Below, one piece after another: positions 3,531-58,116 of a DNA stretch of 64,000 bases; positions within the stretch are counted from its first letter, which is position 1; each line of letters starts with the position of its first letter. The stretch lies in contig NW_026781915.1 in NCBI RefSeq assembly GCF_031769215.1, positions 496,001 to 560,000 of the forward strand, written 5' to 3'. The notes beneath the pieces were generated by a model. That model saw only the letters and a program-made list of their open reading frames with translations. It ran no database searches and was not told the DNA's origin. Both the position numbers and the translations under genes were made by a program. This stretch comes from Ylistrum balloti (taxonomy: Eukaryota).

Positions 3531-6500
3531 AACTTTAATATGCTGGAGATTAATTGTAATAAAGTTGATATTAAATTTGATATAACGGTACATGTACTAA
3601 CTGTTAATCACTGGATGTAAGCTTTCAGCAACTGGGTGCAGTATTAGCGTACATCACTCAGATATTAATTTTTTATTAACTGGATGTTAACTTTCATCAT
3701 ATTATTATGAAGTTTTATCGACTTGACGTTAACTAGTACCAACAGGAAACTGTCTTGAGTAGAGTAAGGAAGCATATAATCGCATAGGAAGGAGTCTGAC
3801 TGAAACTTTGTGACAAAGGTTTTCTAAAACAATGTATTGTCTGTTATACAATATAACTTATTATATGAAGCTTCATACAAAGAAACAGGAAGAAGATTAT
3901 ACAATCATTTTGTAAGTAAAATGTATATGATCAGTATACAACACTATTAAATACCAGGCATTGAACGCAATATATATATACCTACCACACTTCTGAACAA
4001 ATGATCATACACAGGAATATTATATCAGTCGTTGATCCCTTTTATAATTCTGCACTGAAATACATGACAATATTATTTTCAGATGTTGAATCTCATATTT
4101 ATTTCCTTTAGAACACAATTTATTGTATCCATGTTAATGAGTCTTTAAGAATGTTAAGTATTATTCTAGCACCTTCCTGTAGGAAAACTGTATTCCAACT
4201 CTTTATTATCACAAGCTCTTTTAAGTATCTTTTATGCATGTCATTATATACATATTATTAAATATTTATAATTTTTTAACCAACTAAGGTCGGTTTTGAT
4301 ATTTGCTGTAGGATTTTCTCCCTTTGATATGTTTCGCTACAGAAAACAACTTTTTGGAAGGCAAATGTACAATTTCAGTATTAAATAGATGTACTATTCA
4401 ATTTTATTGGAAGTTTTTTTATTGTAGTTTGTTATGAAACATCAGGTAAACTATACAGGTATTGGTGTATTGTGACCTATTAGGTCTCTCAGAAAAAAAG
4501 TCAACAGTTAATTGTTATCTGAAATATATATTAAAGTATTTCTTAAGTTTTGTAACAGATTTAAATCAATTTCATTATTATTATTTTTAAAAAGATTATT
4601 AACATTTGGTTAAAGAGAGGTACACACTATGGTCTCCCAAATATATATACATAATTAAACTTCAGTAATATGTATTGTACATGAAATTCCAACTGTAAGT
4701 ATTGTTTATACCCAAAATCAATGACTGTGGTCAGTAAAGCCCTGTAGATCGGTACATTACCCCTCAACGTGTTCATGTTAGGAATAAGGAAATTTTATGT
4801 AGTACAGCTTGTTTAACCCCCTTTATTCTCAATACTACATAGGACATACACTTGTTGATAAAATCAGGAACTGATGTTGTATGTGGTCTTGGTGCTAGAT
4901 TTCATCATATTATTGAGTTTTGTATTTGAGATAGACATTTTTTTTATATATCTGATTGATTGGGATATTTTTTATACTTTAGGTCATTCCCTGGTTGGAT
5001 TTTGTTAATGCATATATGAATGCTACAGTCTTATGTCTGTGCTGTCACTGCATGACTTGTTACCATGGTAACAATGATTAGTGGCAGATGTCATTTTATA
5101 CTTTGTTGCATGTATTGATATTTATGTTCATTCCCATATCTGAGGCTCCGGTAGTGAAGTAGCAGCTCATTTAGCACTGTAATTGATGTGCCTTTGTACA
5201 TTACAATACAAAGTAGATCACCAGGAAGCTTATCAACACTGATGTCTCACTTAACACCGATGTGTAGAGCTGCAAAATTCATTGCACGTTCTACATAAGG
5301 TGTAGTCAATGACGTGTTGCTTCTCTGTCAGATCTTGTTTGACAACAGAATTTTCAGTATTCTAATTTATGATATATGTTGATTCCAGCTGGGTTTTTTT
5401 ATTTTATGAATTTGGTATAAATTGAATGTTAAATTGTCTACAGGGTATAATCATGATGAAAGTTTTAATTAGTGTTCCTTTTGAATTCTGATAAGCCTGA
5501 GTAATACTCATTTTTAATTTGATTAAAAAGAAAATCATTATAAAATGTACATAACATACTGATGATTTAAGTAAGTACAAGGTCAGTAACATCTGAATCC
5601 CCCAGATGTTTGATGATATAACATTGTCGAGTCTTGTTACCGTAGTAACTGATGTACTACCTACCTCCAGCCTTCCCTGTTCACTAGTCCAGATAGAGTT
5701 GTGCCAATTGTACCCATTTGTAGTAATACAATCTCCACAACAAACCATTTTTTTTAACTTCAATATTTTTTAATTAAGTTTTTACCTGTACTTAGTACAA
5801 AATTCATTTGTTTATTTTTAAAGTTTATGTGAATTTGCTGGTCATTAGACCTTGTAAAACTTAGGTATTTCATATAATGTCCTAACAATGTAGCAATGAC
5901 TTGGTGTAACTGTTATACTGATATGTATGCACAGACATATGAACAACATTATTAACACTTTGTATAAAATGACCTAATTGTCAAAAGCTGAATTTATTTC
6001 AACCTTTGTATTGAGGTTTATCACATATTGTCAAAACAGTGCTTGGTCTTGCACCAAGTCTTCTGTTGATTCATTCACAGAAACAAATTTTATGATGTTG
6101 CAAAACATGATGTTTGAATCGATTCCTATTTCTATTAATAATAATTTGCACTTATTGTAAGTGCCCTACATTTCATTAAAATACGAAGATTGATTAGCTT
6201 TGATAATGATGGGTTTTTTTCGTTTATTTAAAGGTGAGTTTTGATATATAGTGTAGTTAACTGGGGACAAGACTTTTTTGTTCAAAATGCATGTACCCAT
6301 GTTTTGTTTGATATGAAATCATCACAGAGCTTTTAACCTTCAGTGTAAAATGAAAATGTACTGCCAAATATATCCTGGATTAAATGTAGATTAAAGTTGT
6401 GCAAGTAATGTGCCAACATCAGAATGGTTTGATTTTTACTCTTTCTGCAAGGGAGATAAATGTTTGAAAATGTGGGCCCAATTTTCAGCGTATTGTTGTT

Positions 6501-9714: not shown

Positions 9715-12700
9715 TCAGGATTTAGAGGGAAATGTGGTGCCTTTAACTGTGGTCCGATGAAGTATTCGAAGTCCCACCTGAGACACGGGGTACTGTGTCT
9801 CTGGTGTTGCCTCATGTCCTACAGCCAAGTTGTCAGAGATGATGAAATCTCCCTCCTCCCACTGGAAAGTATGTATAAATAACTGTAAAAATATCCTTAA
9901 TACAGCAAAATGAATTTAATATGTGCATAATCAATGCAAAGATTTGTCATAAAAATGACAGTTGTTTATCTACTTAAGAAATAACTTTGGATGTGAAATA
10001 AGAGGTTTGTTTTAGGAAACAAAAACATATATCTTCCTTACTACAAGTAGCAAATATGTATATATACTGTTTTTGTAATAGGTTGTGTGTGCAAGAATGA
10101 AAATGAAGAAAAATATTAATTTAACTGTTGCTATTTATAAACTGATAACAATGTTGGTAATTTTGATATTCAAAGCAGAGTAACCAAAGCACTGCACTTT
10201 GTCAGCAAGTGATAAAGGTGTACAGTAACTTTCATAAAGAAATCTTCAGCAGCTTAAAAGTAATCACCAAGACAAGATATAATTGAGTGGTGATGATATA
10301 CAGCAACTTTTGTGATGATATCTTAATAACACCTGACAAGAAATTATTGGAAAAAATTGCACTTATTTGACCTTTAATAATGAGGTCAAGTGACCCCATG
10401 GCAGTGCATTGCACATCAGCTTTTGGTAATTCAAATATAAAGTTTTGTTAAGATATGTTCAATGGCCTGGACAAGAAATGATCAAAATAATCATAATAAG
10501 GAACCTGTAAAACAAATTTTCTTTCCTCATTCAAAGGGAAGACAAAATTGACAATGAGATTGACAGGGTTCCAAGTTGGGTCATGCTTTAATCTTGAAAT
10601 TAAGGTCACGGTGACCTAACAGCATAGTAGTTGACATCAACTTTGGATGATTGAATTGAACAGCAAGTTTCAGTGAGACATCTTCAACAACTTAAATGTT
10701 TTCACCCAGAAAAGATGTCATAGAAAAATTCACACTTATTTGACCTTTAATCTAGAGGTCAAAATAACTGTGACATAACTGCAGTGCACTGCACATTGGC
10801 TTTAACAGTTTAAAATGTATTGTCTTCAAATAGAAATTAGAAGATCCAGAAGTCCAGTAATAAAACAGTATTTCTCTCTCCCTTCACTAAAAGAGGAGAC
10901 ATGGTTAATGACTTTTTGGAGGATGGGACCTTCTCTGGAACACTAAAGGTGATCTGACTTAACACTTAGGAAGAATTTTGTAAGGATATTACCACAATGT
11001 ATATTGTGTTTCTTGTGTATGTATGACCAATAAACATATGTTCAGAAGCAGAGAGGACTCTTGCGTGGACACAACCATGCTGACTAACCTTGTGGGAATA
11101 AATGAGACGTCGATCATCTTTGACAATTTCCTGATGTATGTCCTTAAGAATCCTTATTGTCTCCATGTCAGTGGTGAGTCGTTCTTCTTTTGTACCTTTG
11201 TCCATAACAAACCCCTCAGTCATACCAAGATGGAAACATAATGTCTACAACCAAAGATAGTGTGTCACAGCTGAAACCTCACAAATAATACAGAATAAAC
11301 TTAGTACTTGGTCAAGCGATGAATATCTGACTAAAAATTTTTAACTTCATATAACTACATTGGTCTATTAAATCTTAAACTTTCAACTTATATCATTGCT
11401 GTATGGTGTTACTGTTTCAATTAAAACAAAAGACTCAATGGGCCTGCATCACTTACCTGGTATTCAATACAAAGTGGGTCAATATCAAATTTATTGAAGT
11501 CAACTTCAAAAAACTTGCAAAGTGAAATAGAATCCAACTATAAATGATGGATGATATTCTGGAAAACTCCAATGAAATTAATATCAGGTTATTGAACTTT
11601 GAACAGAAATTCCATGTTTCATATCACAATTCTGCAAGTAAAGATTTTTACCACTTCCTAATAGACAAATCTGCATTAATTTTTGTGATCAGCCAGAGGA
11701 GGTCATTACAGTATTTTAACAAATTTGACACTCGTGAACCAGAACAAACAAATTTATACTTTATTCAGCAACAAATTATGATACTTTATGGAAGTAAAGA
11801 CAGGTTACTGAGTGGGAGTAATGAGAGGTTACCGAATGGGAGTTTTCAAAACTGCTTAGATCTCACTCTATCCCTGATGAATGAACTTGTTAACTTACTG
11901 GAGCTCTGGTAACAGGGTGGGAGTAAATGAGAGGTTACTGAATGGGAGTTTTCAAAACTGCTTAGATCTCACTCTATCCCTGATGAATGAACTTGTTAAC
12001 TTACTGGAGCTCTGGTAACAGGGTGGGAGTAAATGAGAGGTTTGGAAGCCTTTTCTCTGAGGTCACTAATCATCCACAATCTCTCCCAAAGAGCACGTTT
12101 CTCTGGTGATAAACTCTCAATCAAGTCAGACAGCGAAACAAAAGCTACAAAAAGAAACAATTCAACGGTAGTAGAAATGCACACTAGTGTGGTGTTAAAA
12201 GACGGACACTCAGACACCTGTGGACAGACCGGTCTTATTGTAAATCAACACTTTGCCAACTACCTTCATCATGTTGATTGGGAGGTCAATGCGACTGGCA
12301 AAGAGAATACTGTACTCATCTTGCAACTGAATGATTATGGTTCAATTCCCTGTTACAACCTGAATCACTTGCCTGACCACATGCGTCTTCTTTGCATGTC
12401 ACAGTTTCTTCCCATAAAAAGTCCAAGGCAGTGCAATTTTATTCCAGCCGACAGGAGTAATGAAGAAAAGTTAATCTAACTTAAATGTCTCATAATCTAC
12501 AATAAACAGACAATTCAGCTGATAATAATCCCCATCACCACACCATCTCACCAAGGTGAACCAATACCCTCAAGTATGCAGTATCAGTTACTAGGAGCGC
12601 TGGAAATTGAACCTGAACAACCTTTTTCTTTTTAATAGGTTGAAGGTCAAAATGTAGGTCACAATGATTTACTTTTGATACATGACTCAAAGCGAACCCA

Positions 12701-13537
12701 TATCCTAAGTATTAAGTTTCCATAAATAGAACTGTTGGAGGTAGTGCCCAGACAAACTTTTCCTTTGATGTAGATCAAAGGTCATAATGTAGGTCAAAGT
12801 GATCTGATGAAGGTGACCATGTGGTCATCGAGACGTCATACTCTCATCTTCTACTGGTTGCGTTATAAGAATTTTATTCTGCTGACATTTCCAACCTGAA
12901 CAAATATACGTTGACACACCAACTCCCATATCACAAGTAGTAAATTCCTGTGATTAGTTTTGGACAAGGCACGAACAAGATAGTTGAAGAACAGAAGGAT
13001 GGACGGACACAACGCGAAACACAACACTCTGGCGATGGACTAATAGAGAAAAGTGTTTGAACATAAAAAGGTTACAAATAGACGATCATACTTGATTGTC
13101 AATGTAATATAGAATTATTTGCCTTTAGACGAGTGCAATATCAATAGGAAGCTGCCATCGATGTGCCAGTGCGTTAGCTTACCCGTATCTCCGCGTTTAG
13201 GTATGGATACCATATGATAGATGGAATATGAGAATGGCTTATTCATGAAGCTGCCATCGATGTGCCAACCAGTGCGTCCCACTCGTGTACAGCCTTCCGA
13301 TTCATCGTTCGATACTCGGAAAACGTCGGGATGAGGAGATTTTGGATGTTTGTAAAACGTCGACTCCAACTCTCCAAACCATTTACTGATTTCAACGTGC
13401 TTGTCACCACTGACAATGCCCTGGTTTTTAAAAATGAGTAATTTGTGTTTATGCACGTCGTCTCGAATACTATTTATGACTTCCTGACATGTAATTTCTA
13501 TTAACTTAATGTTTGACACAATCTTGCCGATTTTCAT
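9715..13537 (-). CDS. TauD/TfdA-family alpha-ketoglutarate-dependent dioxygenase, 4 exons, 265 aa
   Basis: Exons 13537-13183, 12144-12005, 11244-11089 and 9861-9715 (phases 1,0,0; all GT-AG) total 798 nt. Motifs: LLIFKNQG, GWHIDGSF (HxD), GDTAFVSL, HPVT, HKWEEGDFIISDNLAVGHEA (distal His) and ILHRTT (2OG-binding Arg). A few N-terminal residues from an upstream exon cannot be excluded. Confidence 0.9.
10170..10900 (+). mobile_element. Non-autonomous pearl/HINE-like element with internal tandem modules, in dioxygenase intron 3
   Basis: Repeated modules aaatt.cacttatttgaccttta...gaggtcaa...gcagtgca.tgcaca at about 10354 and 10726, with a related module at about 10590. Confidence 0.55.
11803..12040 (-). 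repeat. 106-bp tandem duplication covering the 3' end and donor site of dioxygenase exon 2
   Basis: atgagagg recurs at 11821, 11927 and 12033, with near-identical sequence between copies. Confidence 0.95.
12490..13050 (+). mobile_element. Non-autonomous pearl/HINE-like element in dioxygenase intron 1
   Basis: aaggtca...gtaggtca modules, aagtttc motifs and a ggatggacggacac microsatellite near the 3' end. Confidence 0.55.
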
Positions 13538-16227
13538 TTTTGTCTATATTACTTTCTTACCTCAAAATAAAAGAGTTCATTGACTCTTGTCGATCCAACC
13601 GCCAAATTTTAAAATGAAAAATCCTAAATCTAGATAAATATAAGGAACTGGATGCTGATACTTGAGGAGGAAGTCTACGTGGGATATAGTGCTAAACATG
13701 CCCGAAATAAAGATGAGATCATTTGGCTCTACTGACAATACTGCACTGTATTTGATTGTAAATTTGTATTGAAAGGTACAAGACATATTCACTTGTGTAC
13801 TGTAACGTTGTCTTACAAACAACTTTCAAAGTCATTCTGATATCCCAGAGTTACTACCCTTCCTTTCACTCAATCAGATGGTACAGTGATAAGCTTGACA
13901 GCCGATGGGGTCCGAGAAAGGGGTGAAATATATTCACACTCCAAAAGAGCTTGATAATTATACAAAGTTTTGAGTAATTATCTTAAATAGTTTCAGAGTA
14001 CTGGTCTGGAAAATGACCTTGATTGGATGGACAGATGGAGCCCAATTTAATATCCCTTGCAAACATGTTTTGCAGAGGAAAGAAATAGAACTCTTATAAA
14101 ATTTCTTTGTACAAAGTGCCATAACTCTGTAAAAAGTGGTAATAAGGAACTGAAGCTTGATTTGTGACTTTTTACAATAAAAAAAATATACATAATTTCT
14201 GCACAATATGTTGGTATGACAAAACTAGAAAATGTCTGTAACACATGAATGCTTCCACATGCGTCAATACATGTATTATGTATGAAGTTACCAAGGGTGA
14301 ACTTTGACCTTTAAACCTTGGCCAATGACAAATGCAATGTAAGGATACTATGAGGCAAATAAGAACCAAATCTAGAATCGGTGTTCTTATAACACCACCA
14401 ACAGAAGATACAGAATGTTAAGTTGACTACATTATGTAGTTTGTATACAGATTTTGAAGGTATCTGATATTAATAAATCAACACAGTATTTTTTTAAAGA
14501 AGGATGTGTTTTAATATCTCATTTTTTTTTTATTTTTTGTTATACAAAATGAAAATACTTCAGTCTTTGATTTTATCAATGTAGAACCCAACCAATAGTT
14601 CAATACAATGTTAAATGCTGCATCAAATTATACATATAATCCATTCATCTATCAAACCTAATCATAGCTCAACAGGTACCTAGGAGACTAATATAAACAA
14701 AATCAATACATGAAAAAAAAGAAAGCTGTTTTCTTGAAAGGAAGCAGTCACTTTGAAAATGAATTTTAATAGTTAACATGTCTAGAGATAGAAGACTTGT
14801 CATCAAAATTAAGTTTTTGAAATACTCCATACAAAAACAATGGGTTTTTTCTCTCTTCAAAATACCCACATTCAGTATGTGGAAACTTACTTTAAGGAAA
14901 ACAGCAAAAGTGGGTTTTTTTTGTTTTATTTTTTATCAATAAGGTGATTGTGATTATTTGATCAGTGCATGACAAACTGACCTGTGATGAAACCATCCAA
15001 AAAACATCCACAGCATTTTCCTTACAATGGCACACACCCTGATTTCTCAAATATCTTGACAATAAAAGTACATCTTTACAAAGAATTAACTTAAAATTTG
15101 TTGATAGTTCCTGTGTATCTCTACTCGAGTGTGCACCCTTATGGGGTTTCAAATGAATGTATAAAACTTGAATGATATCCTGTCTACAATTTCAATATAT
15201 CAACTACATAAATGCTAACACATTCACTGTACACAATGTAAAACATATTAAAACAGCTTTAGTTCATCATTACTTCAAAAAATTACAATGTTTACAAGTC
15301 TAAAATCATCAACTAAAGTTGGAGTAACACATTTTTATCAACAGTGTCTTTTCTGATATGCAGTTTTTGCAATCTGAAGAGCAAGTAACAAAATGAAACA
15401 TTATGAACTATCATGACAAATCTTCTAGATGAAAATATCCACATGTCAAATCACATTCTTCAGAGAGGATCTCAATGCAGAAATTAATAAAATGAATAAG
15501 ACTGGCAGTCAAAACAATATAAAACTTATATCAATCTCTTAACAGACAGATACAAGCAAAATAATGAGAAGAAAAAAAATGATATTACTATATGCCCTAT
15601 ATGGGATTTTGTCAGTCATTAGCCATTACATTGATGCAATTTTATCTATATTAGTGTACCAAAGTTTATATAATGTAAGTATGAGGTTTTTTTGACAGCA
15701 CTGTAATTTATTGTATGAGCTGATCCCTTTCAAAACTAATATGAAGCATGAAAGACAGAAAAGAATGTAAAGAATTAAGATCATTATACTGATAGACATA
15801 GTAAGTACTAATACAAGAAGAGTATACAGATCAAAGTTTTCAATGATAGTGTACAGAAGAAACATTTTTGATGCTAGTGTAACCATCAGTAAGAAACGGT
15901 GTCAATGCTAACATCCTGTAAGACGATCAAACAAAATTGTTGCCATGCCTTTAAGTATCACAGTTTATGAAGCAGGCAAGAATTTACTAGAATTAAATGC
16001 TTGTGTTAAAACGTTGTTGCCACATGCCAAGGAAAGGCAGATTGTGTCTTTATGAACTACATTCAGGGTGTGAATGAAATGAGAATGTCTGTGGGTATCT
16101 CTGTGTGCGTAGTTGTGTTGGCAGTCACTGTAGAGCTGTCCTTGGGAGGCGTAAATAGCAAACTTGGTCGCTGAAATGTACAATATACATTGCATTACTC
16201 CAGATTATATACCAATATACAGCTGTA

Positions 16228-41162: not shown

Positions 41163-43122
41163 ATGATGTGTTTATTGTACTTAGGTAAACTTCAACACCT
41201 TTTGATTTGCACTAATTTCTCACAATAACGCGCCTGAAAACGATATGCGAGAATATCGTTGAAAGAATGTCTTGTAAGAATCCTTGAGTAGACTGAGGGT
41301 GTAGCAAATCCGATTTATAGTTTTCCTGAAACTGGTATTACATCCGTTTTGAAAAGCATCCATAAAACCATTGTCTTAAATAATCTTAAATATTGTATTA
41401 AAAGAAACACTGTGAGAAATGAAGAACGAAATAGTTTTAACAAATTATTTTCTATTCTGTGCAATATAGGGACAGTTCGGTAATATATTCTTATATACAA
41501 TGTATAGACATACCAGATAAAAACAAATCATAAAATGAATTTGTTTCAAAGGTTTGTTATTGGCCCAAACGTTCGGCGTTTTGGCCGACTGTCCAGGATT
41601 GCACCACGACACACCCACGTCTGAAATAATGGGAATATGTGGACAACTGGATGTTTGTACTGCGAGAGACCCCAATCACAGTTCTTCTCAGGTATTCGAC
41701 AGAAACATAGCTCTGAGACTTTGGAGGAAAGCTAAACGGATGGACAGAGCGTTTGACGACCTGGTAAGTTGTAGAGTATCGAATACATAACGACTAATCA
41801 TTGTTTCCCTTTGGCCTGTTGCTGCTTGTTTTCAATATTCGTTACTCTGTGAAGAACAAGCTTTGTAATGAACGGGTTAGGCTTAAGCATTGTGTTGGTT
41901 ATGCAGAATGATAAAATTTATTTGGAAGTTCTGCATTCTTAATAGCAATCTCATCGAGATTTTATTGAAGCGATATGGATCTGAACGAGTTTGATGCTCA
42001 TTATTTTGCGTGTTGGGTCAGTGTATACGTTGTTCTCATTTGAGAACATAACATTACCAGTACTATGTCACAAGCTATCTATCTGAGCCAGTACGATCAT
42101 CTCATATTTTTTTCATGGATACAAATGGATTTGTCAAATGTTATACTTTGCTAGTATGGCCGATGTAGTCCTAGCATCATACCATCTCCGACTGAGGAAT
42201 GTCGCTCATGTATGGAAACACTCCTCCCTCATAATCTACCTTATGAGAACGTCACGGCAAAAGAAGTAAGTATATGAATTGATCAAAGAAGAAAAGTCTT
42301 GGCATACACACACATTTGTTTTTGTAATTTACTTTCTTCAGTAAATCCGTTGACATTATCACAAGAGTTTTAGAATGGAGATTTAAAAAAAAGTCAAATA
42401 GTTAGATGTTTCATGTTTGTGTGTTTTTATATAGTTTCACGTTATCTGAATGTATATAGTCTAACAACGGCGAGTAAATATTATTCAAAGCTGAAAATCT
42501 CTTAAATGAAACATTTGCAACGTTTAGTATCGCACAGAAACGTTTTTGAAAAATACAGCATTTTTTACTGAAATAAACCATTTTCAGAGTGACCTATTCA
42601 CTTTACGTTATCATGCAGTCTTTGAAAAGAGAGAACCATGGCTCTTTCAAAGCTCCGATTTCAACTAGGTATCTGTAAGAGTGTAAATTAAATACAAAAT
42701 AGCCAGCGGAGGGACAATGCAAACAGTTTTAAAATAATCATAATGTGTATATATATATTTTGTTTCAGATGAGGGATAGTTTATTAACAGATTATACAGT
42801 ATTAGGAAAGGTCGTGGGAGCCCTCACGCGCATGCACGAAGGTTGTTCGCGATATCTGTATGTCCACCATCATATCACTAGGGCTGAAATTGCGACGAAA
42901 CAGCTCATGTGTGAGATCGGTGTGTCCCTTCCAAGTGTCGGGGGTGATCAACCCTGTGGCCCTCTGTATCCTTTACTGACCTCATGGTGTCATACAAACA
43001 ACTGTTTTGATTGGTATGATCGCAACTTTCTAGTTATGGACAAGCTCATCGATACCTCACAAGCCGTGAAGAGCAAGTATACCCATTTATTGTCAAGCCA
43101 CGTGATATACGATGCGAAATAA
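41163..43122 (+). CDS. Secreted 232-aa protein, candidate long-chain four-helix cytokine (Unpaired/IL-6-like), paralog A
   Basis: Exons 41163-41184, 41552-41763, 42155-42265 and 42769-43122 (intron phases 1,0,0; GT-AG) total 699 nt with no internal stop. The signal peptide is MMCLLYLGLLLAQTFGVLA. Amphipathic segments: RNIALRLWRKAKRMDRAFDDL, SLLTDYTVLGKVVGAL, EIATKQLMCEIGVSL, DRNFLVMDKLIDTSQAVKSKY. Exon 1 is the least certain element. Confidence 0.75.
41945..42057 (+). mobile_element. Penelope-like 3' fragment in intron 2 of cytokine-like gene A
   Basis: Aligns by eye with 45477-45601; shared blocks include atctcat.gaga, tttgatgctc.tta.tttgc.tg.tgggt and tcatttgagaac..acattac. Confidence 0.7.
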
Positions 43123-43469
43123 GGTCGCAGGTATTTCAGCTGTACACGAATGAGGAGCAAACAGTTTCGATGTGTCGTTTCAACATGTAATGCTTGTTCT
43201 GTACATTAACTTATAAGGATTACTTTATACAAGGAATAATGACATGTCAAAACAATTGCATCTAGGCCAATTGTTTTGGTGAAATCTTATTTGCTTTCTA
43301 TTTTTCGACTTAGGTTCCTAAAGCATACTACCTCCAGCACTTGGTCGAATTAATGCCATCGTTGTATTAAACTTACACACTTTGCTATGATTATGTATTT
43401 TATACCATATTGAAGTTTATGTATCAATATATACGTGTTTTTTTATCACAAATACTTATCTTATATGTT

Positions 43470-44335
43470 GAATTGATATCGTCACTGGGCGGTATCTTTT
43501 TCTGTATCCTTTATTTCCACTGGATAACGTTTATTTTTTTTATTGAATGATACCTTTTTACGTGTTACTATTTTCATTGGATGCTAACTTGTCACGTATT
43601 ATAATTGCCATGATAACTGTTTACGTTTTATTATTTTCACTGGATGATAACCTTTTACGTATCTTTCATTGGATGATAACTGTTTACGTTTTATTATTTT
43701 CACTGGATGATAACCTTTTACGTATCTTTCATTGGATGATAACTGTTTACGTTTTATTATTTTCACTGGATGATAACTTTTTACGTATCTTTCATTGGAT
43801 GATAACTGTTTACGTTTTATTATTTTCACTGGATGATAACTTTTTACGTATCTTTCATTGGGATAACTGTTTACGTTTTATTATTTTCACTGGATGATAA
43901 CTTTTTACGTATCTTTCATTGATGATAACTGTTTACGTTTTATTATTTTCACTGGATGATAACTTTTTACGTATCTTTCATTGGATGATAACTGTTTACG
44001 TTTTATTATTTTCACTGGATGATAACTTTTTACGTATCTTTCATTGGATGATAACTGTTTACGTTTTATTATTTTCACTGGATGATAACTTTTTACGTAT
44101 CTTTCATTGGATGATAACTGTTTACGTTTTATTATTTTCACTGGATGATAACTTTTTACGTATCTTTCATTGGATGATAACTGTTTACGTTTTATTATTT
44201 TCACTGGATGATAACCTTTTACGTATCTTTCATTGGATGATAACTGTTTACGTTTTATTATTTTCACTGGATGATGACCTTTTACGTTTTATTATTTTCA
44301 TTGGATGATACCTTGCCACGTATTATTATTTTTTC
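43470..44335 (+). repeat. 63-bp dimeric (34+29 bp) higher-order minisatellite just 3' of gene A
   Basis: tggatgataactgtttacgttttattattttcac alternates with tggatgataactttttacgtatctttcat; this produces the 21-aa periodic ORFs. Confidence 0.95.
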
Positions 44336-44729
44336 ATATACGGATCCTTTTGTCAGTTTCTATTTTACCTCATTTTTCGTGGACAATATCGGCCTATTAT
44401 AGCATGTCTTTTTGATATAATAAATGTAATTATAAAGCAAATGTGTTTGACTCTAAGTACTAGATGAATAACACTACTTTGAGTATCAAATGATTTGATT
44501 TGATTTTTCAAATGTTTTGTTGACAAAGACATCGTTGTATAGGAACAATCACGAAGGACATGTCCCAACAAAGGAGGGCTGTCATTTAACAGACATCAAC
44601 CACACTGTCATCATCCACATTGTCATTAATTCTTTCAATAACATAAATACATGTATCTACACATAAACATACATTATATTGGCTATAACAATTTACAAAA
44701 CTTTTAATTAATTTATTCAATGAAATTTT

Positions 44730-45700
44730 CAAATGTATCCTCATCACCAAATCTTTTTTCTATACTACTAACCACCATTCCAATTACTATCAAAACTGGG
44801 TTACACTCTTCTTGTGATACTGTTTACTCAAGAAATGGAGTTAATAGTGTGTGGATTTTGAAGAATTCCAGAGAACTTTTGACCAATCTTTAACACCCTC
44901 TTCTAAAAACATTTCTTCTATAATAACATTTTATATTTACACACTGTACACAACCTTACCCCATTCTAAACGGAAGAGGCGCCTTCGTTCTCTTGTTATG
45001 AGAGCTTGCTTCTCCAAGAAAGGTGAACGGCGGTATAAATATGTAGCTGTGAACTATACAGAAGCGTATTTCGTAAAACTTACGTCAAAATCAAAGAAGT
45101 AATATACGGAGGACAAAATAATCATTGAGTTTTTTGTTGACAACGTCTTCGTCGAGTTTGGTGGAAAGACTTTGAAAATCCTTTAATTCCACCTTCAGAT
45201 ATATTGATGACGTCTTGTCTTAAAATTATAAGAAAATTTATTGACTGCGTCCATCGTATATATCCATCAGAAATGGAAGTCAAAGATACGACAGACTCTT
45301 CTACGGCAGCTGCTTATCTCGATCGTTTTCCTACAACGAAGCCAACATGGACAGTTGTACGATAAACGTGATGATTTAAATTTCCCTATTGTGAATTTTC
45401 CATTTCTGGTTCCTAACACAAGAGTTCAAAAGATGCAGGCCGGTGAAATTTATGGGAAAGTTTTATGGTCGCCATAGTGATCTCATTGAGAAATATTCTG
45501 TTTCTTTGTGGGATATGAAGCTGGACGTATTTGATGCTCGTTAATTTGCCTGCTGGGTACGTTGTTGTATATCTTGTTTTCATTTGAGAACGTGACATTA
45601 CTTACTGGGATTGACCACGGTTTACATAGCGGATGTCGTCGATGAAGCAGAAAACGCTTACTCTTCCGAAACACCTGGTCTTATTCTCCGTGTTAATATT
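44730..45700 (+). mobile_element. Decayed Penelope-like retroelement (bivalve-type RT)
   Basis: Frameshifted motifs: GLHSSCDTVYSRNGVNSVWILKNSRELL, TLYTTLPHSK, GERRYKY, DNVFVEFGGK, KDTTDS..AAYLD, LYDKRDDLNFPIVNFPFL and GKFYGRHSDLIEKYSVS. The tail acgcttactcttccgaaacacctggtc is typical of this family. Confidence 0.85.
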
Positions 45701-48311
45701 TCTTTTGTTAATATTAGGCCCTAGTTTTATGGAATTTGAGTTTGAAGTATGATGATGTTGCCATGTTGGTATTTTCTGGATGCTTTTTTTTCAACAGAAT
45801 CTAGAAGTATCTTGAAATTCACATTCCAATTAACAGACGGGATTTCACGATATCTAGGACCCTTCATGAAAAGCTCTCGTACTTAACATTTTGAATAATG
45901 GTTAAATCACAAGTTACCATGTGCCCAGTTAGACCATAGTTACAAGTAGATGTAGATCAAGAACAAGGTGACGGAGGACAAGTTCTTATGTTATCTACAT
46001 TCAGTTGGATGCCTTGAGTAACTATAGCAAATTACAGGTTTTTTTTCTGCTTTGAAAGTATGGCGGTATTTAGCCTGAACAGACTTCTGGTATAAAATAT
46101 TGCTGATGTTTATTATTATTATTTTCATACTTGTTTATACTGAAATACATTATGCAAATTGATAATAGTTATAAAAATAAAGACAAAATATAAATAAATC
46201 TTTATATAAAAATGAATGAACACACAAAAGTAACATTCCGGAGCAATTCTTCGGATTGGCAATGTCATTTGAATAGAAGTTCTTAAACGACAGGAAGTAG
46301 AATTCATATTCACATACTATATACCCTAACATGATATATGGATAATTCAAATATAGCTTTCCCGTTAGGGTATATATCAGCGTCATTATTGGACAACAAA
46401 TGCTCTATTCTAATATGACGATGCTATGATTTACGTGTTGGTTTTAACTCGATATAACAAAAGGTCTAACGTTTTAAAGCAATGTTATTATCACATATAT
46501 TCTTCTCATATAATAATTGTATTGTAACAAAAAAGAAAAATACTACCGAAAAAGTACATATCATGTATCATATCAAGTTTTTAAAATTAATTATTTAATT
46601 TTAATTGTGCTTTATTGGAATATTACTTGTGAATAATTTTTTCCAAAACTAAAGTATCTGGAGATTGAGCCTTGCTGACGTTCTACATATCACATCTTAT
46701 TCTAATTAAGAATGACACCTGCACATAATATGCATTTACATGAATATTTATTTTAACATTTGATTCCAATGATCTGCATCCATATGGATTCTTAACTTCA
46801 CTGAGGATTTCTAGTAGAACAAAATGTTGCATTTTGAGGTGATTTCCCTTTTTATTTAGTTGTATTTGCTATTTTTAACCCTCAAGACTACTATGTTGAC
46901 ATGCTGTTCGATGTTTGCGTTTACTCACACAAATCAATAATTACAACAAAAACACAAAGAATGTAATCTTGTTTAAAATTATAAGCAGATGAAAACAAAT
47001 ACTAGTCATATGGCATTTTAGGACCCAATCAATTGATCACGTACTTGTCAAGATACAAGAATCTTTTTTCTAATTTTATTGAATGTCGTTTTGTTCAGTA
47101 GAGCTGTTTCTCTGTCTTTCTATACTGATATGACCTAGACCGTCAGACAGATGTCAAACAACAACATACCTGAATAATATACAGAAGAACATGTACATAA
47201 ACTGTGTAAAGGATCTCTTATTTTTGTTGTATTTATTACAGCTTTCACCCTTGCTTTAGATTGATAGCAAAACTAAGACAATTAAAACCTTCATTTTGAT
47301 GGTGAGGAAGCAATTACAAATATTTCCGATTGAAAAAAGAAACAGGGGGGAAGTGCCAATTCTATAAAAGTAAGGACTTACCTCTTTGTGAAAAGAAAAG
47401 AAAACAAGAAACTTTCCACGATAACTTCAGTAACATTTTTGTATCATAGGTTTGGTATACACATAAATTACCAGTGATATTTCGGAGTACAACATTATTC
47501 AAATTGTCATTGGTCAGAAACGCTGATCAATTCAGTCCCACTTGAAAGCAGGAAAAAATGTCAAAGGGTGACATTGACCCTGGAGTATAAACCTGTGACT
47601 CATTAGTTCACTCATTGTTACAAATACCTATTGGGATTATGGTAAAGTACAACTACTACAATCGCGTGACAATTATTCACAAGTTGAATACAAAGCCATA
47701 AAGCAAACAGTCACAGTATTGGTTTCATGGGTAAAGAAAGAGGTATTTAACTTTCTTTAGGGTAGTTTCTATTGCTATACAAATTACTGAGTGCATAGCA
47801 ATTACTTCTTCGATTCCATTGGCATCTAAAGGAAAATGGCTTGTAACAAAATAGAAAGGCGTGTTATTATTCGTGGGATTAGAGATGACTAGTTCTACTG
47901 GGAATAACCACAGGGTTTCCAATTTTAGGAAAGTTTTCCCCAGTTTTCTTTATAAAAGCATTGCGTTCTGAAGAATCAGATACATTAGTAAGTACAGTGT
48001 AGTGATCTAGAACATGACAACATTTAGTCGTAAGTAACCTAGTTATCCCATTGCAATGTATCATTTCATTATCAGCCAGTGTGATAAATATTTGTACCAG
48101 CTTGACATTAGAAACTTATATATTTTTAATCATCTCTAGCTTTTCCGATGATAATATAACTCACGCATTTGTGACCAATTATAGCGGTGCTCTCTATAGT
48201 CACTGAGTCAGGTTTTCTTGTTAGGACACAGCTGAAGAGAAGATTGAATGCGTTGGTTTTCAATCAAGTTATTTGTCTGTGTTCTCTAATTTAGTGTGTA
48301 AAATAATTATG

Positions 48312-48358
48312 TATAAATATTTCGTACCAGGTAACAGTACTAAAAGATAAAGGATCAG
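48312..48358 (+). promoter_or_regulatory. Putative TATA box and short non-coding first exon of cytokine-like gene B
   Basis: TATAAATA at 48312 is followed by a strong donor CAG|gtaagg at 48358. An acceptor tatag| at 48875 lies 7 nt before the ATG. Confidence 0.4.
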
Positions 48359-48882
48359 GTAAGGCATTTAATTCAAATTGGCGACATCATGTTGTCACTT
48401 GGAACGTCAAATCATCTTATGTTTTTCATTTTGAAAAGAAACAGGAAGAAAAGTGTTGGTGTTAAGTATCATATACAATACTATTAGTGCGCCAAATACT
48501 TTCAAATAGAGGACACGCTTTTAAGGAACAAATGACAAATTGTGGGTTTCATACTTCAGTCCTAAAGAGTGTTTTACATCAGAGTAAGAAAAAATACAGA
48601 CTAGGTTTGGCATTTATCTGCTAAATCATGGTAACATCTTTATCACTCTTCTTCATTTAACAGAGTTTTAGGTTTTGTCTTGTTATTCATAATAAGCCTT
48701 TGTAATGTGTAACCACAATATACATATGACTTACTGTGGTTCCTAGGATTATTGATGGATGGTTTGATGTAGAGTTTTAGTTCAATATTGTAAAATTTAC
48801 GGAATCTAGAAATATTTCGACGATCAAGTGTTGTGACTTTTTTTTTATCGAAGATTCCTGTAAACTATCGTATAGAAAAAAT

Positions 48883-51352
48883 ATGCATATCATACAGGTA
48901 TGTTCCATCTTCACAGTATGGTTGGCTTGCCTGTGCGTGGCGTCATATTTGCTGCCGTCGATGGGAGAACTTTCTCCTGCGTTTTCCGATCTTAACATTG
49001 GCACCAAGAACATTTGTGGAGAAAATGTCCCTCCTCAGTATCCAGCCGACATCGATTTCCCATTCCATGAGGTCGTTATCCCGCCATCATTCAGACGGAA
49101 CATCCATCGTCTAGAGAGGAAGGCACTCCAGCTGAAGCACAGTGTGACGAGCTTGCTTCGTCTATATGTAAGTTTATTGTGAAAAGCATCATATTTGGTT
49201 TGGTTTTCTATGAGATCAAAATACATTTAAATGAAACATAATAATAACAATTATATGATTGTGAACAGCAAGATGACCGTATTTGACGTGAATAAAACAA
49301 TTTTGGTGCTATTTTAAGGAAGCTGAATTTATCTTAGTTCTTCCAGATGTAGATTTTTTATTTCATCCTCTGCGTATCTGCCTTTCCCTAGTTTTCCCTT
49401 GTATTTTTCATTGCCATTAACTTTCAAACAATTGAATTTTGACCGTTTTGTAAACTTTCCTCGCCTAGATAGTTTACTGTTTTTTCTCGGTTAGTATCAA
49501 TCCTACCGAATGATTAAAATCGTGAGTAATCACCACTCTCTGATATTACAGGAGGAAGACAGACTATCCAGATCTGCTGATATCGATGAGATAACATACT
49601 TTCCACCGTGTTTTCAACTCATCAACAGAACCAGTTTTGTTGTGATGTCGGAGTTGTCTCCCTTCACGGTAAGTGTAAACTGAATATTTCATTTGTACAT
49701 ATTTTGGCATTGTTTCATCTATTTTAAGTTCGAATGAAAATTTTATTCACATGTTGGCATTTTTGTATTTATATAAATACTTATTAAATGGGTTTGATAA
49801 GGACTTGAATATTCACGGGACAATAACAGATCTAACAATGGTTTATTGAAACACACGCAGTCTAACCAGATTTTATATAGTATACACAGGGAATCTAACA
49901 AGGTTTTATATAATATACCCAGAAAAACTAACAAGGTTTGATATACCCTGAGAATCTAATAAGGTTTTATATACCCTGGGAATCTAATAAGGATTAATAT
50001 ACCCTGATAATCTAATAAGGTTTTATATACCCTGATAATCTAATAAGGTTTTATATACCCTGATAATCTAATAAGGTTTTATATACTCTGATAATCTAAT
50101 AAGGTTTTGTATACCCTGATAATCTAATAAGGTTTTGTGTACCCTGATAATCTAATAAGGTTTTGTATACCCTGATAATCTAATAAGGTTTTATATACCC
50201 TGATAATCTAATAAGGATTTATATACCCTGGGAATCTAATAAGGTTTTATATACCTTGGGAATCTAATAAGGTTTTGTATACCCTGATAATCTAATAAGG
50301 TTTTATATACTCTGGGAATCTAATAAGGATTCATATCCCCTGAGAATCTAATAAGGATTCATAACGTCTAATCAAGATTTATATACTCTGGGAATCTGAT
50401 AAGGGTTTACATAATCGCACTGTTACTTTCTTTAATTAGATAAGTGACAGTGTCATTTTTCACAAAGGGCCGAGGAAGCATATATCCTGGGGAACTGGGA
50501 AAGTAGACAAGGTTTCTAAAAAGGGTTTTAAAATTATCCAGGAACGCTACGCGGGGTTTATATATTCGGGGAAAATTATGTAATTAATAAAATTCAATTT
50601 CTCTTACTTTTATTTTATTATTTCTATATAAATGTATTTCAAAATAAAAAACATAACAAAATGGCAGAAATCAGATATATGTAGTAGCATCCCAAAACAT
50701 TATTTTTTTATATTTATTGGAAAATTTAAATGTTTTAATGAAAATCAAAATTTTCGATAAACTTAATTCTAGCAAAGGTACTTTTCCTCACACCGCTGAC
50801 TTCAATTTTGTCAAGTTTTAGTAACACTTTTTTCTTTCAGTTCATGAACTTGATGTTTTTAAGGAAAACACTCGCCATACAAGTTTATTTTTCTGCTTAA
50901 CTAATGAGTCGTCTTGAACGGAAGAGAAAATTTCACTCTCGTTTCTTGAGGTTTTAATAGGATTTTAACATCTTTCTGTTATATACGCCTTTGTGTTACA
51001 GATATATCGATCACTGAAACGGGACTTTCATACTATGACAGACTTCCTTGGTATGTTGGAACTTATGAAAGAGGACGAAGCAACTTTCGAAAATTCCGAG
51101 TTAATTCTGAACTTTCTTCAGATAGAAATCAACACAAAGAGTCTTCTCTGTGAACTTTCTTTCTCCATTTCTGCCCTAGAAAGTTCCGTCCCCTCCACAG
51201 TGGTTAGGCTTCGTCTAGACAAATGGTGCGTTGCTGAGGGAGCAGACGACTGTTGGCGCTGTAACAGAGATTCCATGATACTGAGTATGATTGATAAGCT
51301 GTGTTTTACACTTCGAGATAAATACAGACACATCAGGAGAAACATATTCTAG
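48883..51352 (+). CDS. Secreted 250-aa protein, candidate long-chain four-helix cytokine, paralog B
   Basis: Exons 48883-49167, 49552-49668 and 51002-51352 (both introns phase 0; donors gtaagt) total 753 nt. The signal peptide is MHIIQVCSIFTVWLACLCVA. It shares with paralog A the motifs ICG, RNI..RL.RKA, SL..D, EI.TK.L.CE, WC, R...L.M and KY.H. Confidence 0.78.
49860..50415 (+). repeat. 28-bp minisatellite in the last intron of gene B
   Basis: About 18 copies of ataccctgataatctaataaggttttat. Confidence 0.95.
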
Positions 51353-55500: not shown

Positions 55501-58116
55501 CTTCTACCAGTACAGTACTTAACCCTCAGTTCTACCAGTTCAGTACTTAACCCCCAGTTCCACCAGTTCAGTAACTAACCCTAATTTATATCAGTACAGT
55601 AACTAACCCTCACTTCTACCAGTACAGTACCTAACCCTCACTTCTACCAGTACAGTAACTAACCCTCACTTCTACCAGTACAGTAACTAACCTTCACTTC
55701 TACAAGTACTGTAACTAACCTTCACTTCTACCAGTACAGTAACTAACCCTCACTTCTACCAGTACAGTAACTAACCTTCACTTCTGCCAGTACAGTAACT
55801 AACCTTCACTTCTACCAGTACAGTAACTAACTCTCACTTCTACCAGTACAGCACTTAACCCTCAGTTCCACCAGTTCAGTAACTAACCCTAATTTTTATA
55901 AGTACAGTAACTAACCCTCACTTCTACCAGTACAGTACCTAACCCTTACTTCTACCAGTCCAGTAACTACCCTTACTTCTACCAGTACACCAACTAACCC
56001 TAATTTTATCAGTACAGTAACTAACCTTCACTTCTACAAGTACTGTAACTAACCTTCACTTCTACCAGTACAGTAACTAACCTTCACTTCTACCAGTACA
56101 GTAACTAACCCTCACTTCTACAGGAATTCACTTTCGCTACTATATGGACAGACACTCGTACTCTCTTACACCTTCATAACATTTACCCTCATAGTAACTC
56201 ACGCTCACTTTCCCTCACTTGTTACTGTCATCACTCCTCCCCATTGTAACTTAACATCGCTGCTTCCTTAACGTAACTCACCCCCATTTCTTCCCCATTG
56301 TAACTAACCGTACCGTCATTCATCCTTACTTCTACCAGTACAGTAATTCACACACATACATTTCTATCCTCTATTCAACTCACCAGTATGTTTACCAATT
56401 CATTTACTCACTATTAGTCCTACCAGCACAGTATACCGTCGTCTTTTCCATTTTATCAGTAACTTATCATATCTCCATCATGTTCCTCCAGCACGAAAAT
56501 TAGTCATGATCTTGGCGTCAAGAATAACAATCCGTAAAGAAAGGACCCCGTCTGATAAAAACATGCATTTGACACGGTACCTGGCCCCTAGGTGTACACC
56601 GAGATATGTTTCGGTCAAGACGTCTGTAGCATGGCTACAAGTATTATAAAAGGCATTTGATTTGTATTATTTCCAATTTCGTCTTCTAAGAATGAAGTTA
56701 TTTAATTTCAACCTCATATACTTTCAGTATCTCCGACTTTTTGGCTTCGACAAGAATAGAGAACCGGAACTAGAGGAAGTGGAAGATGAATACGGCTGGG
56801 CTCACCTACCTGACATTCTGCTGGAGGACATCTTCGCTATGTTGACCCCCAAAGCCCGCCATCAGGCGTCGCGTGTGTGTAAATCATGGTACAAGACATT
56901 TTACTCTCCGCGCGTCTGGGAGACATTTCTTTTCGAAGAAGGAACTCTCACGAGACGACGATATAACTTGTTCAAAGGATTCACTCGTGAGTTGTGTCCA
57001 AGAAAGGCACAAAACTGTCTCAATAGTGTCGGGACGCTTTTTAAAAAGATCATTATTTGTCCGATCAGTGACTTTTATAATCTTCTTTTCTTGGGTGTCC
57101 TCAGCTCATTTCTCTCGTTCTTTGAAGAATTTCCTATTCCCCTGCTGCACACTTTCCAGTTTACGTTTGCTTGCGAAAGTCGCGGTATCAATGGAAACAT
57201 GGTGTTCGGAACCGGCGGGCAAATCCTCCAAGAACTCAACACACTGATAGCCTGTATCAAGAACCTCAAAACCTTGAGTATCAATCAACTTTTGCTTGCG
57301 GAGGAGGACGTACCTGGCTTGTTTGAGGCCGCTCTTAAATACAATACCGAATCTATTCGCTTTCTTGAGATCATCAACTGTGCAAAAGCTGACACTCCAA
57401 TTCCACAATTGGCAAGATTCGATTGTCTTCAGCGTCTCACTGTGAGTAATCAGCACGTTGATGACGAGGTAGCGATCCTATTGGCGGGAACAGGGCTCTC
57501 TGACCTTCGTCTTGTTCAGGATAAGTACACGTGCGCCACAGAGCCTGTTTCAGCAGACGCCTGGCGTATCATCAAAGATATGGCACCGTTCCTTAAGGTC
57601 ACGCTAGAAATTCGTGGAAAGTGTAAAAACTCACTGTTGCTTCAGCCACATGCACCTGTGACTAGTATCGTTTACGACACGCCCTACTACAAAATTTCGC
57701 ATGCAGATGCAATGGACTTTGTCCACTTCTACAGTAAAACTCTTGAACTGTTTATCCAGAAAGGAATCCCGCGTGTCCATGGCCCCAGATCATTCCACGA
57801 AAGAGGAGATTCTTCTTTTGTAATGATGGTGAAAAATTGTCCGAAGCTCAAAACCCTCATCATCAATGAACGCATATCAACGGCAACTGTTCTCTTGCTC
57901 TCGCACGAGGGAAGGTCATTGGAGACGTTCCTCGTACGGGCAAACGCCATTATCAAGCGGTCGGACTGGCCACGCGATCGAGACTGGTCTGAGGAATTTT
58001 ACATGAAATTAAGAACTAATGCACGCTGTTATAATCGGATGGAAAACGAAGTTGCGCAGAAACACGATTGGAAATGGCGGCCTTTGACGGACAGGGAGTT
58101 TAAAAATATGATGTAA
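52576..58116 (+). CDS. F-box/LRR-type protein (FBXO39/FBXO33/FBXL3-like group)
   Basis: The large exon 56728-58116 follows the acceptor ctttcag| and starts with an F-box (WAHLPDILLEDIFAML...ASRVCKSW..F.SP.VW), followed by LRR-like segments (LKTLSINQL, LQRLTVS, CPKLKTLII). Two phase-0 first-exon candidates are 52576-52620 (MAEELEDSDMEQLTL) and 54215-54310. Confidence 0.88.
53530..54060 (+). repeat. 59-bp minisatellite in F-box gene intron
   Basis: aagtggagatgggcctgtcctggtctgtatcacaggggcctgggaatatgttacagtct at 53581, 53640, 53699 and 53758, with degenerate flanking copies. Confidence 0.95.
54935..56125 (+). repeat. 28-bp minisatellite (about 40 copies) in F-box gene intron
   Basis: Unit agtacagtaactaaccctcacttctacc; period 28 (for example 55145 and 55173). 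Confidence 0.97.

Follow-up and report, generated by a model that had tools for sequence, protein, structure and literature searches.

A tandem gene pair in the scallop Ylistrum balloti predicted to encode long-chain class I helical cytokines of a mollusc-specific family

We have analysed a 64,000-nucleotide (nt) window of the genome of the scallop Ylistrum balloti (contig NW_026781915.1, positions 496,001 to 560,000, containing 0 N) that carries two neighbouring genes on the same strand, here called gene 1 and gene 2. Both are likely to encode secreted long-chain class I helical cytokines that would act on a class I receptor and, through it, on the JAK/STAT pathway. An original prediction, made from the DNA letters, had proposed the pair as candidate class I helical cytokines, and at the level of fold this proposal is supported by an AlphaFold2 (AF2) model, by Foldseek searches, by a scan of the PDB and by language-model neighbours. 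Judged by sequence, the two genes are members of a mollusc-specific family. The family is new in sequence but of a fold class that is already known, and no ligands of this kind have been described from molluscs.

Predicted fold and sequence family of the gene pair

The AF2 model was calculated for the mature gene 2 protein (residues 124-345 of the RefSeq model LOC132561093, a fused annotation described below) from a family alignment of 15 sequences and has a predicted local distance difference test score (pLDDT) of 80.9 and a predicted template modelling score (pTM) of 0.82. It contains four helices (residues 42-70, 104-132, 141-166 and 190-221) in an up-up-down-down topology, with long AB and CD crossover loops (33 residues including a mini-helix, and 23 residues, respectively) and a short BC loop of 8 residues. 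The four helices and long AB and CD loops of the original prediction are thus recovered in the gene 2 model and extend to gene 1 via homology. A strand is also predicted in the N-terminal segment and another in the CD loop, and in the model these two probably pair. The separate phase-0 loop exons first proposed for the two genes, of 37 and 39 codons, are confirmed. Between Ylistrum and Pecten maximus, blastn shows nucleotide conservation in exons only, the introns not being kept, and the conserved stretches include 49541-49674. The gene 2 exon at 49552-49668 codes almost exactly for the AB loop of the AF2 model.

Modelling followed by a structure search, the route that the original prediction had recommended, was run on gene 2 and gave top matches to folds of the IL-6, IL-11, LIF, CNTF and leptin type. 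Foldseek against the PDB returned long-chain cytokines or hormones in 49 of the 50 top matches (CLCF1, prolactin, CNTF, IL-27, G-CSF, IL-11, IL-6, GH, OSM, leptin and IL-12), the exception being a low-probability flagellar stator row; E-values were modest (~1e-2) and template modelling (TM) scores reached 0.77. Against AFDB Swiss-Prot, all 30 of the top 30 matches were long-chain cytokines or hormones. A Foldseek-independent scan of 48,161 PDB representatives placed only cytokines at ranks 1-22 and separated them clearly from generic bundles. Long-chain class I members scored 11.7-15.7 there and interferons 9-10, whereas the first non-cytokine reached 8.4 and Dps/ferritin-like proteins at most 7.6. 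The AFDB fold clusters that match the model comprise cardiotrophin-2 and uncharacterised proteins; the output carries no organism names, and we take the accessions of the latter to be from brachiopod, mussel and arthropod. B4JXR1 of Drosophila grimshawi, possibly an Upd protein, is also among the matching clusters. When superposed on CNTF in sequence order, the model aligns over 170 of 174 residues, and the closest solved structures to the predicted gene 2 fold appear to be those of the gp130/IL-6 group, namely CNTF, CLCF1, IL-11, IL-27p28 and LIF. Assignment of the modelled gene 2 protein to the long-chain class I helical-cytokine fold is therefore considered well supported. Additionally, a language-model neighbour search, which is independent of structure, placed the Pecten orthologs of both genes next to IL6, LIF_OSM, CNTF, IL11, IL12 and Hormone_1 clusters (scores 0.95 and 0.93).

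The relationship between the two genes is distant. Their last exons share 22% identity (pairwise E 6e-7), and hhalign of the gene 1 ortholog group against the gene 2 ortholog group gave a probability of 98.35% over 217 columns, which identifies them, as far as sequence comparison goes, as old and diverged tandem paralogs with a common exon plan. The pair also occurs in Pecten maximus, again in tandem on one strand with 4.5 kb between the genes. In tblastn, exons 2-4 of gene 1 match this locus at 44-56% identity and the exons of gene 2 at 65-80%. Both paralogs are under purifying selection: the Ylistrum-Pecten ratio of nonsynonymous to synonymous substitution is 0.22 in gene 1 and 0.19 in gene 2. 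In a Logan contig of 908 nt (SRR23580857), an open reading frame (ORF) runs without a break over all exon junctions of a gene-2 ortholog, and the contig is therefore a spliced transcript of that ortholog. Within positions 1-60 of this contig the sole upstream ATG is 1 nt out of frame with the main ORF, which may reflect an assembly indel or a different 5' exon.

An exhaustive HMMER search of 1.84 billion representative proteins with a profile from both last exons gave only 11 matches. Those with names are from Pecten maximus, Argopecten irradians, Mytilus and the gastropod Gigantopelta aegis, all of them called 'uncharacterized protein', and the remainder are Logan/JGI contigs. A further match is the RefSeq model LOC132561093 of Ylistrum balloti itself. 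Named family matches thus come only from molluscs, these being bivalves and one gastropod. A word-indexed homolog search with the last exon alone gave no matches, as expected from the length window of that search, and the same search with a full-length ortholog and the family alignment gave no new members beyond the HMMER set. Within the 64-kb window the family hidden Markov model (HMM) found no third member. Positions 46414-46524, between the genes, were considered as a relic exon (family HMM E 0.08) and rejected, their translation being AT-rich and of low complexity.

The layout of a helix-A exon, an AB-loop exon of ~39 codons and an exon for helices B-D is kept in the Argopecten paralog and in two tandem Gigantopelta genes. 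Across the family, the gene opens with a short signal-peptide exon and a phase-1 intron (both observed in the scallop pair), and the exons behind it encode helix A, then the AB loop (~38 codons), then helices B-D. In Gigantopelta aegis, the member P0009 is accompanied by a tandem paralog that lacks annotation; the two lie on one strand at L004:2436-3596 and 10001-13543, the paralog ~7 kb upstream of P0009 and with 77-87% identity in two exons. Tandem duplication of the family therefore recurs outside bivalves.

Inspection of the two proteins also agrees with much of what had been read from them initially. Both have hydrophobic N-termini with cleavage-type sites that are conserved in the Pecten orthologs and have small residues at -3/-1 (VLA/DC in gene 1 and SMG/EL in gene 2, cleaved after VLA and SMG), and the N-terminal ICG is present in both. 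The predicted counts of 11 and 7 Cys in the mature parts are correct; gene 1 has 12 in total, and all seven of gene 2, an odd number that would leave one Cys free or in an interchain bond, are retained in its Pecten ortholog. Among the motifs said to be shared, EI.TK.L.CE, WC and KY.H hold in both proteins, and RNI..RL.RKA aligns only with a one-residue gap in gene 2. By inspection, both proteins would be secreted and have no membrane anchor, and they are predicted to be glycoproteins with mature parts of ~210-225 residues.

Function and alternative readings

After secretion, these proteins would use their helix faces to bind a class I cytokine receptor at its cytokine-binding module, the receptor in question being the molluscan Domeless/IL6R/gp130-like one. 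Binding would dimerise the receptor and so lead to JAK and STAT activation. The window itself holds no receptor sequence.

Several observations weigh against this view. Pfam searches of every exon piece and of full-length relatives, up to E 10, returned no cytokine family, and among the models without a match were those for IL-6, G-CSF, IL-11, LIF-OSM and CNTF. The family profile gave no matches to PDB sequences. The alignment behind the AF2 model is shallow and the model covers gene 2 only, so that the cytokine fold is attributed to gene 1 from its full-length homology and from the language-model result of its ortholog. ESM Atlas shape searches were noisy and judged uninformative: most matches were ferritin-like proteins or unrelated helical ones with TM 0.3-0.4, and a single Hormone_1 row reached 0.60. 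Finally, fold alone cannot tell whether a protein is a gp130-type cytokine, a hormone of the GH/PRL type or a protein of the same fold that does not signal.

This last point bears on two alternatives. The proteins could have the cytokine fold and still act through a class I cytokine receptor, but as systemic hormones of the GH/prolactin/somatolactin or leptin type with roles in growth, metabolism or reproduction. We rate this alternative as unlikely. Resemblance to such hormones exists at the fold and language-model level only; the Hormone_1 HMM (GH/prolactin/somatolactin) has no Pfam match in the family. Somewhat less probable again is that these are secreted four-helix bundles whose lineage-specific role needs no cytokine receptor (they might be carriers, matrix proteins or antagonists) and whose cytokine-like topology is convergent. 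The absence of sequence homology to any cytokine family, the occurrence of the family in molluscs only, and an N-terminal beta-strand pairing with the CD loop together with a Cys pattern atypical for IL-6-type cytokines would all fit such a role. That the bundle is an artefact of modelling from so few sequences, with the proteins having a generic or other helical topology, is very improbable, for although the other four AF2 models reach pLDDT 70-74, the ESMFold model of P0001 reaches pLDDT 0.66 with no cytokine neighbours by shape, and the gastropod member P0009 when folded gives a weak model with weak and non-separating cytokine matches, the pTM of the gene 2 model is high, the loop lengths read from sequence (long AB, short BC, long CD) fit the topology, and the structure-independent language-model search leads to long-chain cytokines for both paralog lineages.

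Secreted cytokines acting on a class I receptor thus remain our preferred interpretation of the gene pair. A stronger version of it, which we hold more tentatively and would put somewhat below even, is that the family consists of ancient mollusc-wide true IL-6/gp130-type cytokines that are homologous to, and not convergent with, vertebrate long-chain cytokines and arthropod Upd, and that they are endogenous ligands of a molluscan IL6R/Domeless-like receptor. On this reading, the shared fold, the intron phases (1-0-0) and the placing of an intron behind helix A would all be signs of common descent. IL6, GH1 and LIF also open with a short coding exon that ends in phase 1, and their subsequent introns are in phase 0. 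If the family is indeed homologous, the ligand side of the IL-6-JAK-STAT axis would date to the bilaterian ancestor or earlier.

Gene models, public annotation and flanking sequence

Coordinates of the exons and associated features are collected in Table 1. The original prediction gave two clean ORFs of 232 and 250 residues. For gene 1, splicing of the window sequence through GT-AG introns joins four exons into an ORF of exactly 232 residues, and Pecten maximus has a homologous 25-nt ATG exon with a gtaa donor upstream of its gene 1 ortholog. For gene 2, the 250-residue ORF was assembled from 48883-49167, 49552-49668 and 51002-51352, and its start requires revision. The Pecten ortholog (XP_033736526) has an annotated first coding exon of 16 nt followed by a phase-1 intron, and alignment with Pecten locates at 48014-48031 of the window a homologous ATG with 16 nt of coding sequence and a gtaagt donor, which would splice in frame to the acceptor AG at 48915-16. 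Because of this Pecten-homologous exon, gene 2 most likely starts in the 16-nt exon 48014-48029 and would encode 244 and not 250 residues, with the signal peptide MTTFSLWLACLCVASYLLPSMG. The ATG at 48883 is probably intronic, in the 3' end of the first intron; the revision leaves the mature protein as it was. Given this start, both genes have four exons with intron phases 1-0-0.

Individual exons are further documented by comparison. Gene 1 exon 2 is identical to residues 1-45 of LOC132561093 and 54% identical to the Pecten locus, exon 3 is present in the same RefSeq model and in the Pecten protein (P0003) at 69% identity, and exon 4 matches the family HMM at E 1e-42 with 56% identity to Pecten. 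The acceptor of gene 2 exon 2 is the one used in LOC132561093, and this exon is 72% identical to Pecten; gene 2 exon 4 matches the family HMM at E 7e-52 and is 80% identical to Pecten.

Table 1. Window coordinates of the two genes and of features associated with them
Feature	Position	Strand	Content	Boundary or evidence
Gene 1 exon 1	41163..41184	+	22 nt including ATG (MMCLLYL + 1 nt), predicted signal-peptide start, then phase-1 intron	GT donor
Gene 1 exon 2	41552..41763	+	Remainder of predicted signal peptide (cleavage ~VLA/DC), Cys-rich N-terminal segment with ICG, helix A (DRNIALRLWRKAKRMDRAFDDL); phase-0 end	
Gene 1 exon 3	42155..42265	+	37 codons, phase 0 on both sides; AB loop, NVT glycosylation sequon	
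Gene 1 exon 4	42769..43122	+	Helices B, C and D and stop codon; motifs EIATKQLMCE, WC, DRNF, KYTH	
'Intron' of RefSeq LOC132561093	42842..48916	+	6.07 kb; starts at a GT within gene 1 exon 4 and ends at the gene 2 exon 2 acceptor	Exact block match and tblastn coordinates
Conserved block upstream of gene 2	47885..47960	+	TATA-like ttataaaag at its end, ~55 nt before ATG	Pecten maximus alignment
Gene 2 exon 1 (revised)	48014..48029	+	16 nt including ATG (MTTFS + 1 nt), gtaagt donor, phase-1 intron	Aligned with first coding exon of Pecten XP_033736526
Gene 2 exon 2	48917..49167	+	Remainder of predicted signal peptide, N-terminal segment with ICG and beta-strand, helix A (RRNIHRLERKALQLKHSVTSLLRLY)	
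Gene 2 exon 3	49552..49668	+	39 codons, phase 0 on both sides; AB loop with mini-helix, NRT sequon	
Gene 2 exon 4	51002..51352	+	Helices B, C and D and stop codon; motifs EINTKSLLCE, WC, CWRCNRD, KYRH	

Public annotation conceals both genes, as the Ylistrum pair is fused in RefSeq and the Pecten gene 1 ortholog is truncated. Letter for letter, LOC132561093 (345 residues) consists of residues 34-139 of gene 1 and then residues 12-250 of gene 2; it extends over 41629-51352 of the window with its junction at 42841/48917 and has neither signal peptide. We reject it as a true gene since it cuts helix B of gene 1 and has no signal peptide, since Pecten annotates two genes, and since a gene-2-only transcript exists. 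It stems either from a read-through transcript or from an artefact of annotation. In Pecten, the gene 1 ortholog LOC117325755 (L001:3390-5480, LR736841.1) is annotated at 158 residues with its start at an internal Met. Upstream of it lie an unannotated signal-peptide exon and a helix-A exon (~4173-4388), with which the protein would be ~230 residues long.

The conserved block upstream of gene 2 is a probable core promoter, as judged from its position and conservation. Compared with Pecten L001:9870-9945, it keeps the strings GGGAATAACC, TTTCCAA and TTTTCCCCA.TTTTCT.TATAA. It holds a TATA box together with GGAA/kappaB-like strings, to which any regulatory meaning would be speculative.

Repeats occur in and around both genes. 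A 63-bp minisatellite of 12 copies with 96% matches occupies the 3' flank of gene 1 (43538-44287) and yields spurious ORFs of 116-129 residues on both strands, and a 28-bp minisatellite of 16 copies with 91% matches lies in the last intron of gene 2 (49913-50363). By eye, ~70 nt of gene 1 intron 2 (41985-42060) recurs in the intergenic region (45525-45600) as tttgatgctc...catttgagaac.t.acattac, probably a fragment of a dispersed repeat. Further downstream, positions 56662-58116 of the plus strand hold an intronless ORF of 484 residues that contains an F-box domain (E 5e-9 in Pfam) and faintly matches leucine-rich repeats. The 54-58 kb stretch around this ORF has a higher G+C content and a strong negative GC skew.

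Comparison with known ligand systems

Molluscs possess receptors of the IL6R/Domeless type, JAK and STAT with no known IL-6-like ligand (PMC13203501), and a survey of the IL-6 family reported no invertebrate matches (PMC9601804); nor is any Upd-like ligand known in molluscs according to these recent surveys. With the scallop pair, the JAK/STAT pathway of molluscs gains its first concrete ligand candidates. Together with their relatives in scallops, mussels and a gastropod, the two genes are clonable candidates, so that a bivalve JAK/STAT activator becomes directly testable. The family is also relevant to the question of a single origin of helical cytokines before protostomes and deuterostomes diverged.

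Relative to the vertebrate gp130/IL-6 family (CNTF, CLCF1, IL-11, IL-27p28, LIF and IL-6), identity in structural alignments is only 10-14%. The scallop proteins differ from that family in an extra N-terminal segment of ~40 residues, which is modelled as pairing by a beta-strand with the CD loop, and in a different Cys pattern that includes a Cys in helix C that is invariant within the mollusc family. In the LIFR-binding gp130 cytokines (LIF, CNTF, OSM, CT-1 and CLCF1), an FxxK motif at the N-terminal end of helix D forms site III. The scallop proteins differ from these as well, in that no FxxK is visible around the start of helix D; a check made on sequence only gives CWRCNRDSMI there for gene 2 and FDWYDRNFLV for gene 1.

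To date, a single helical-cytokine-like ligand has been reported from molluscs, namely CgIFNLP of oyster, a protein of ~15 kDa with the receptor CgIFNR-3 that is described as resembling class II helical cytokines and is reported to activate STAT reporters (PMC8218723, PMC9756803). Among protostomes more widely, Upd1-3 of Drosophila are the known four-helix JAK/STAT ligands, according to Oldefest et al. 2013 as cited in PMC9601804. Like the proposed products of the scallop pair, Upd1-3 are secreted protostome proteins that are regarded as four-helix-bundle cytokines and that act on a gp130-like receptor, Domeless.

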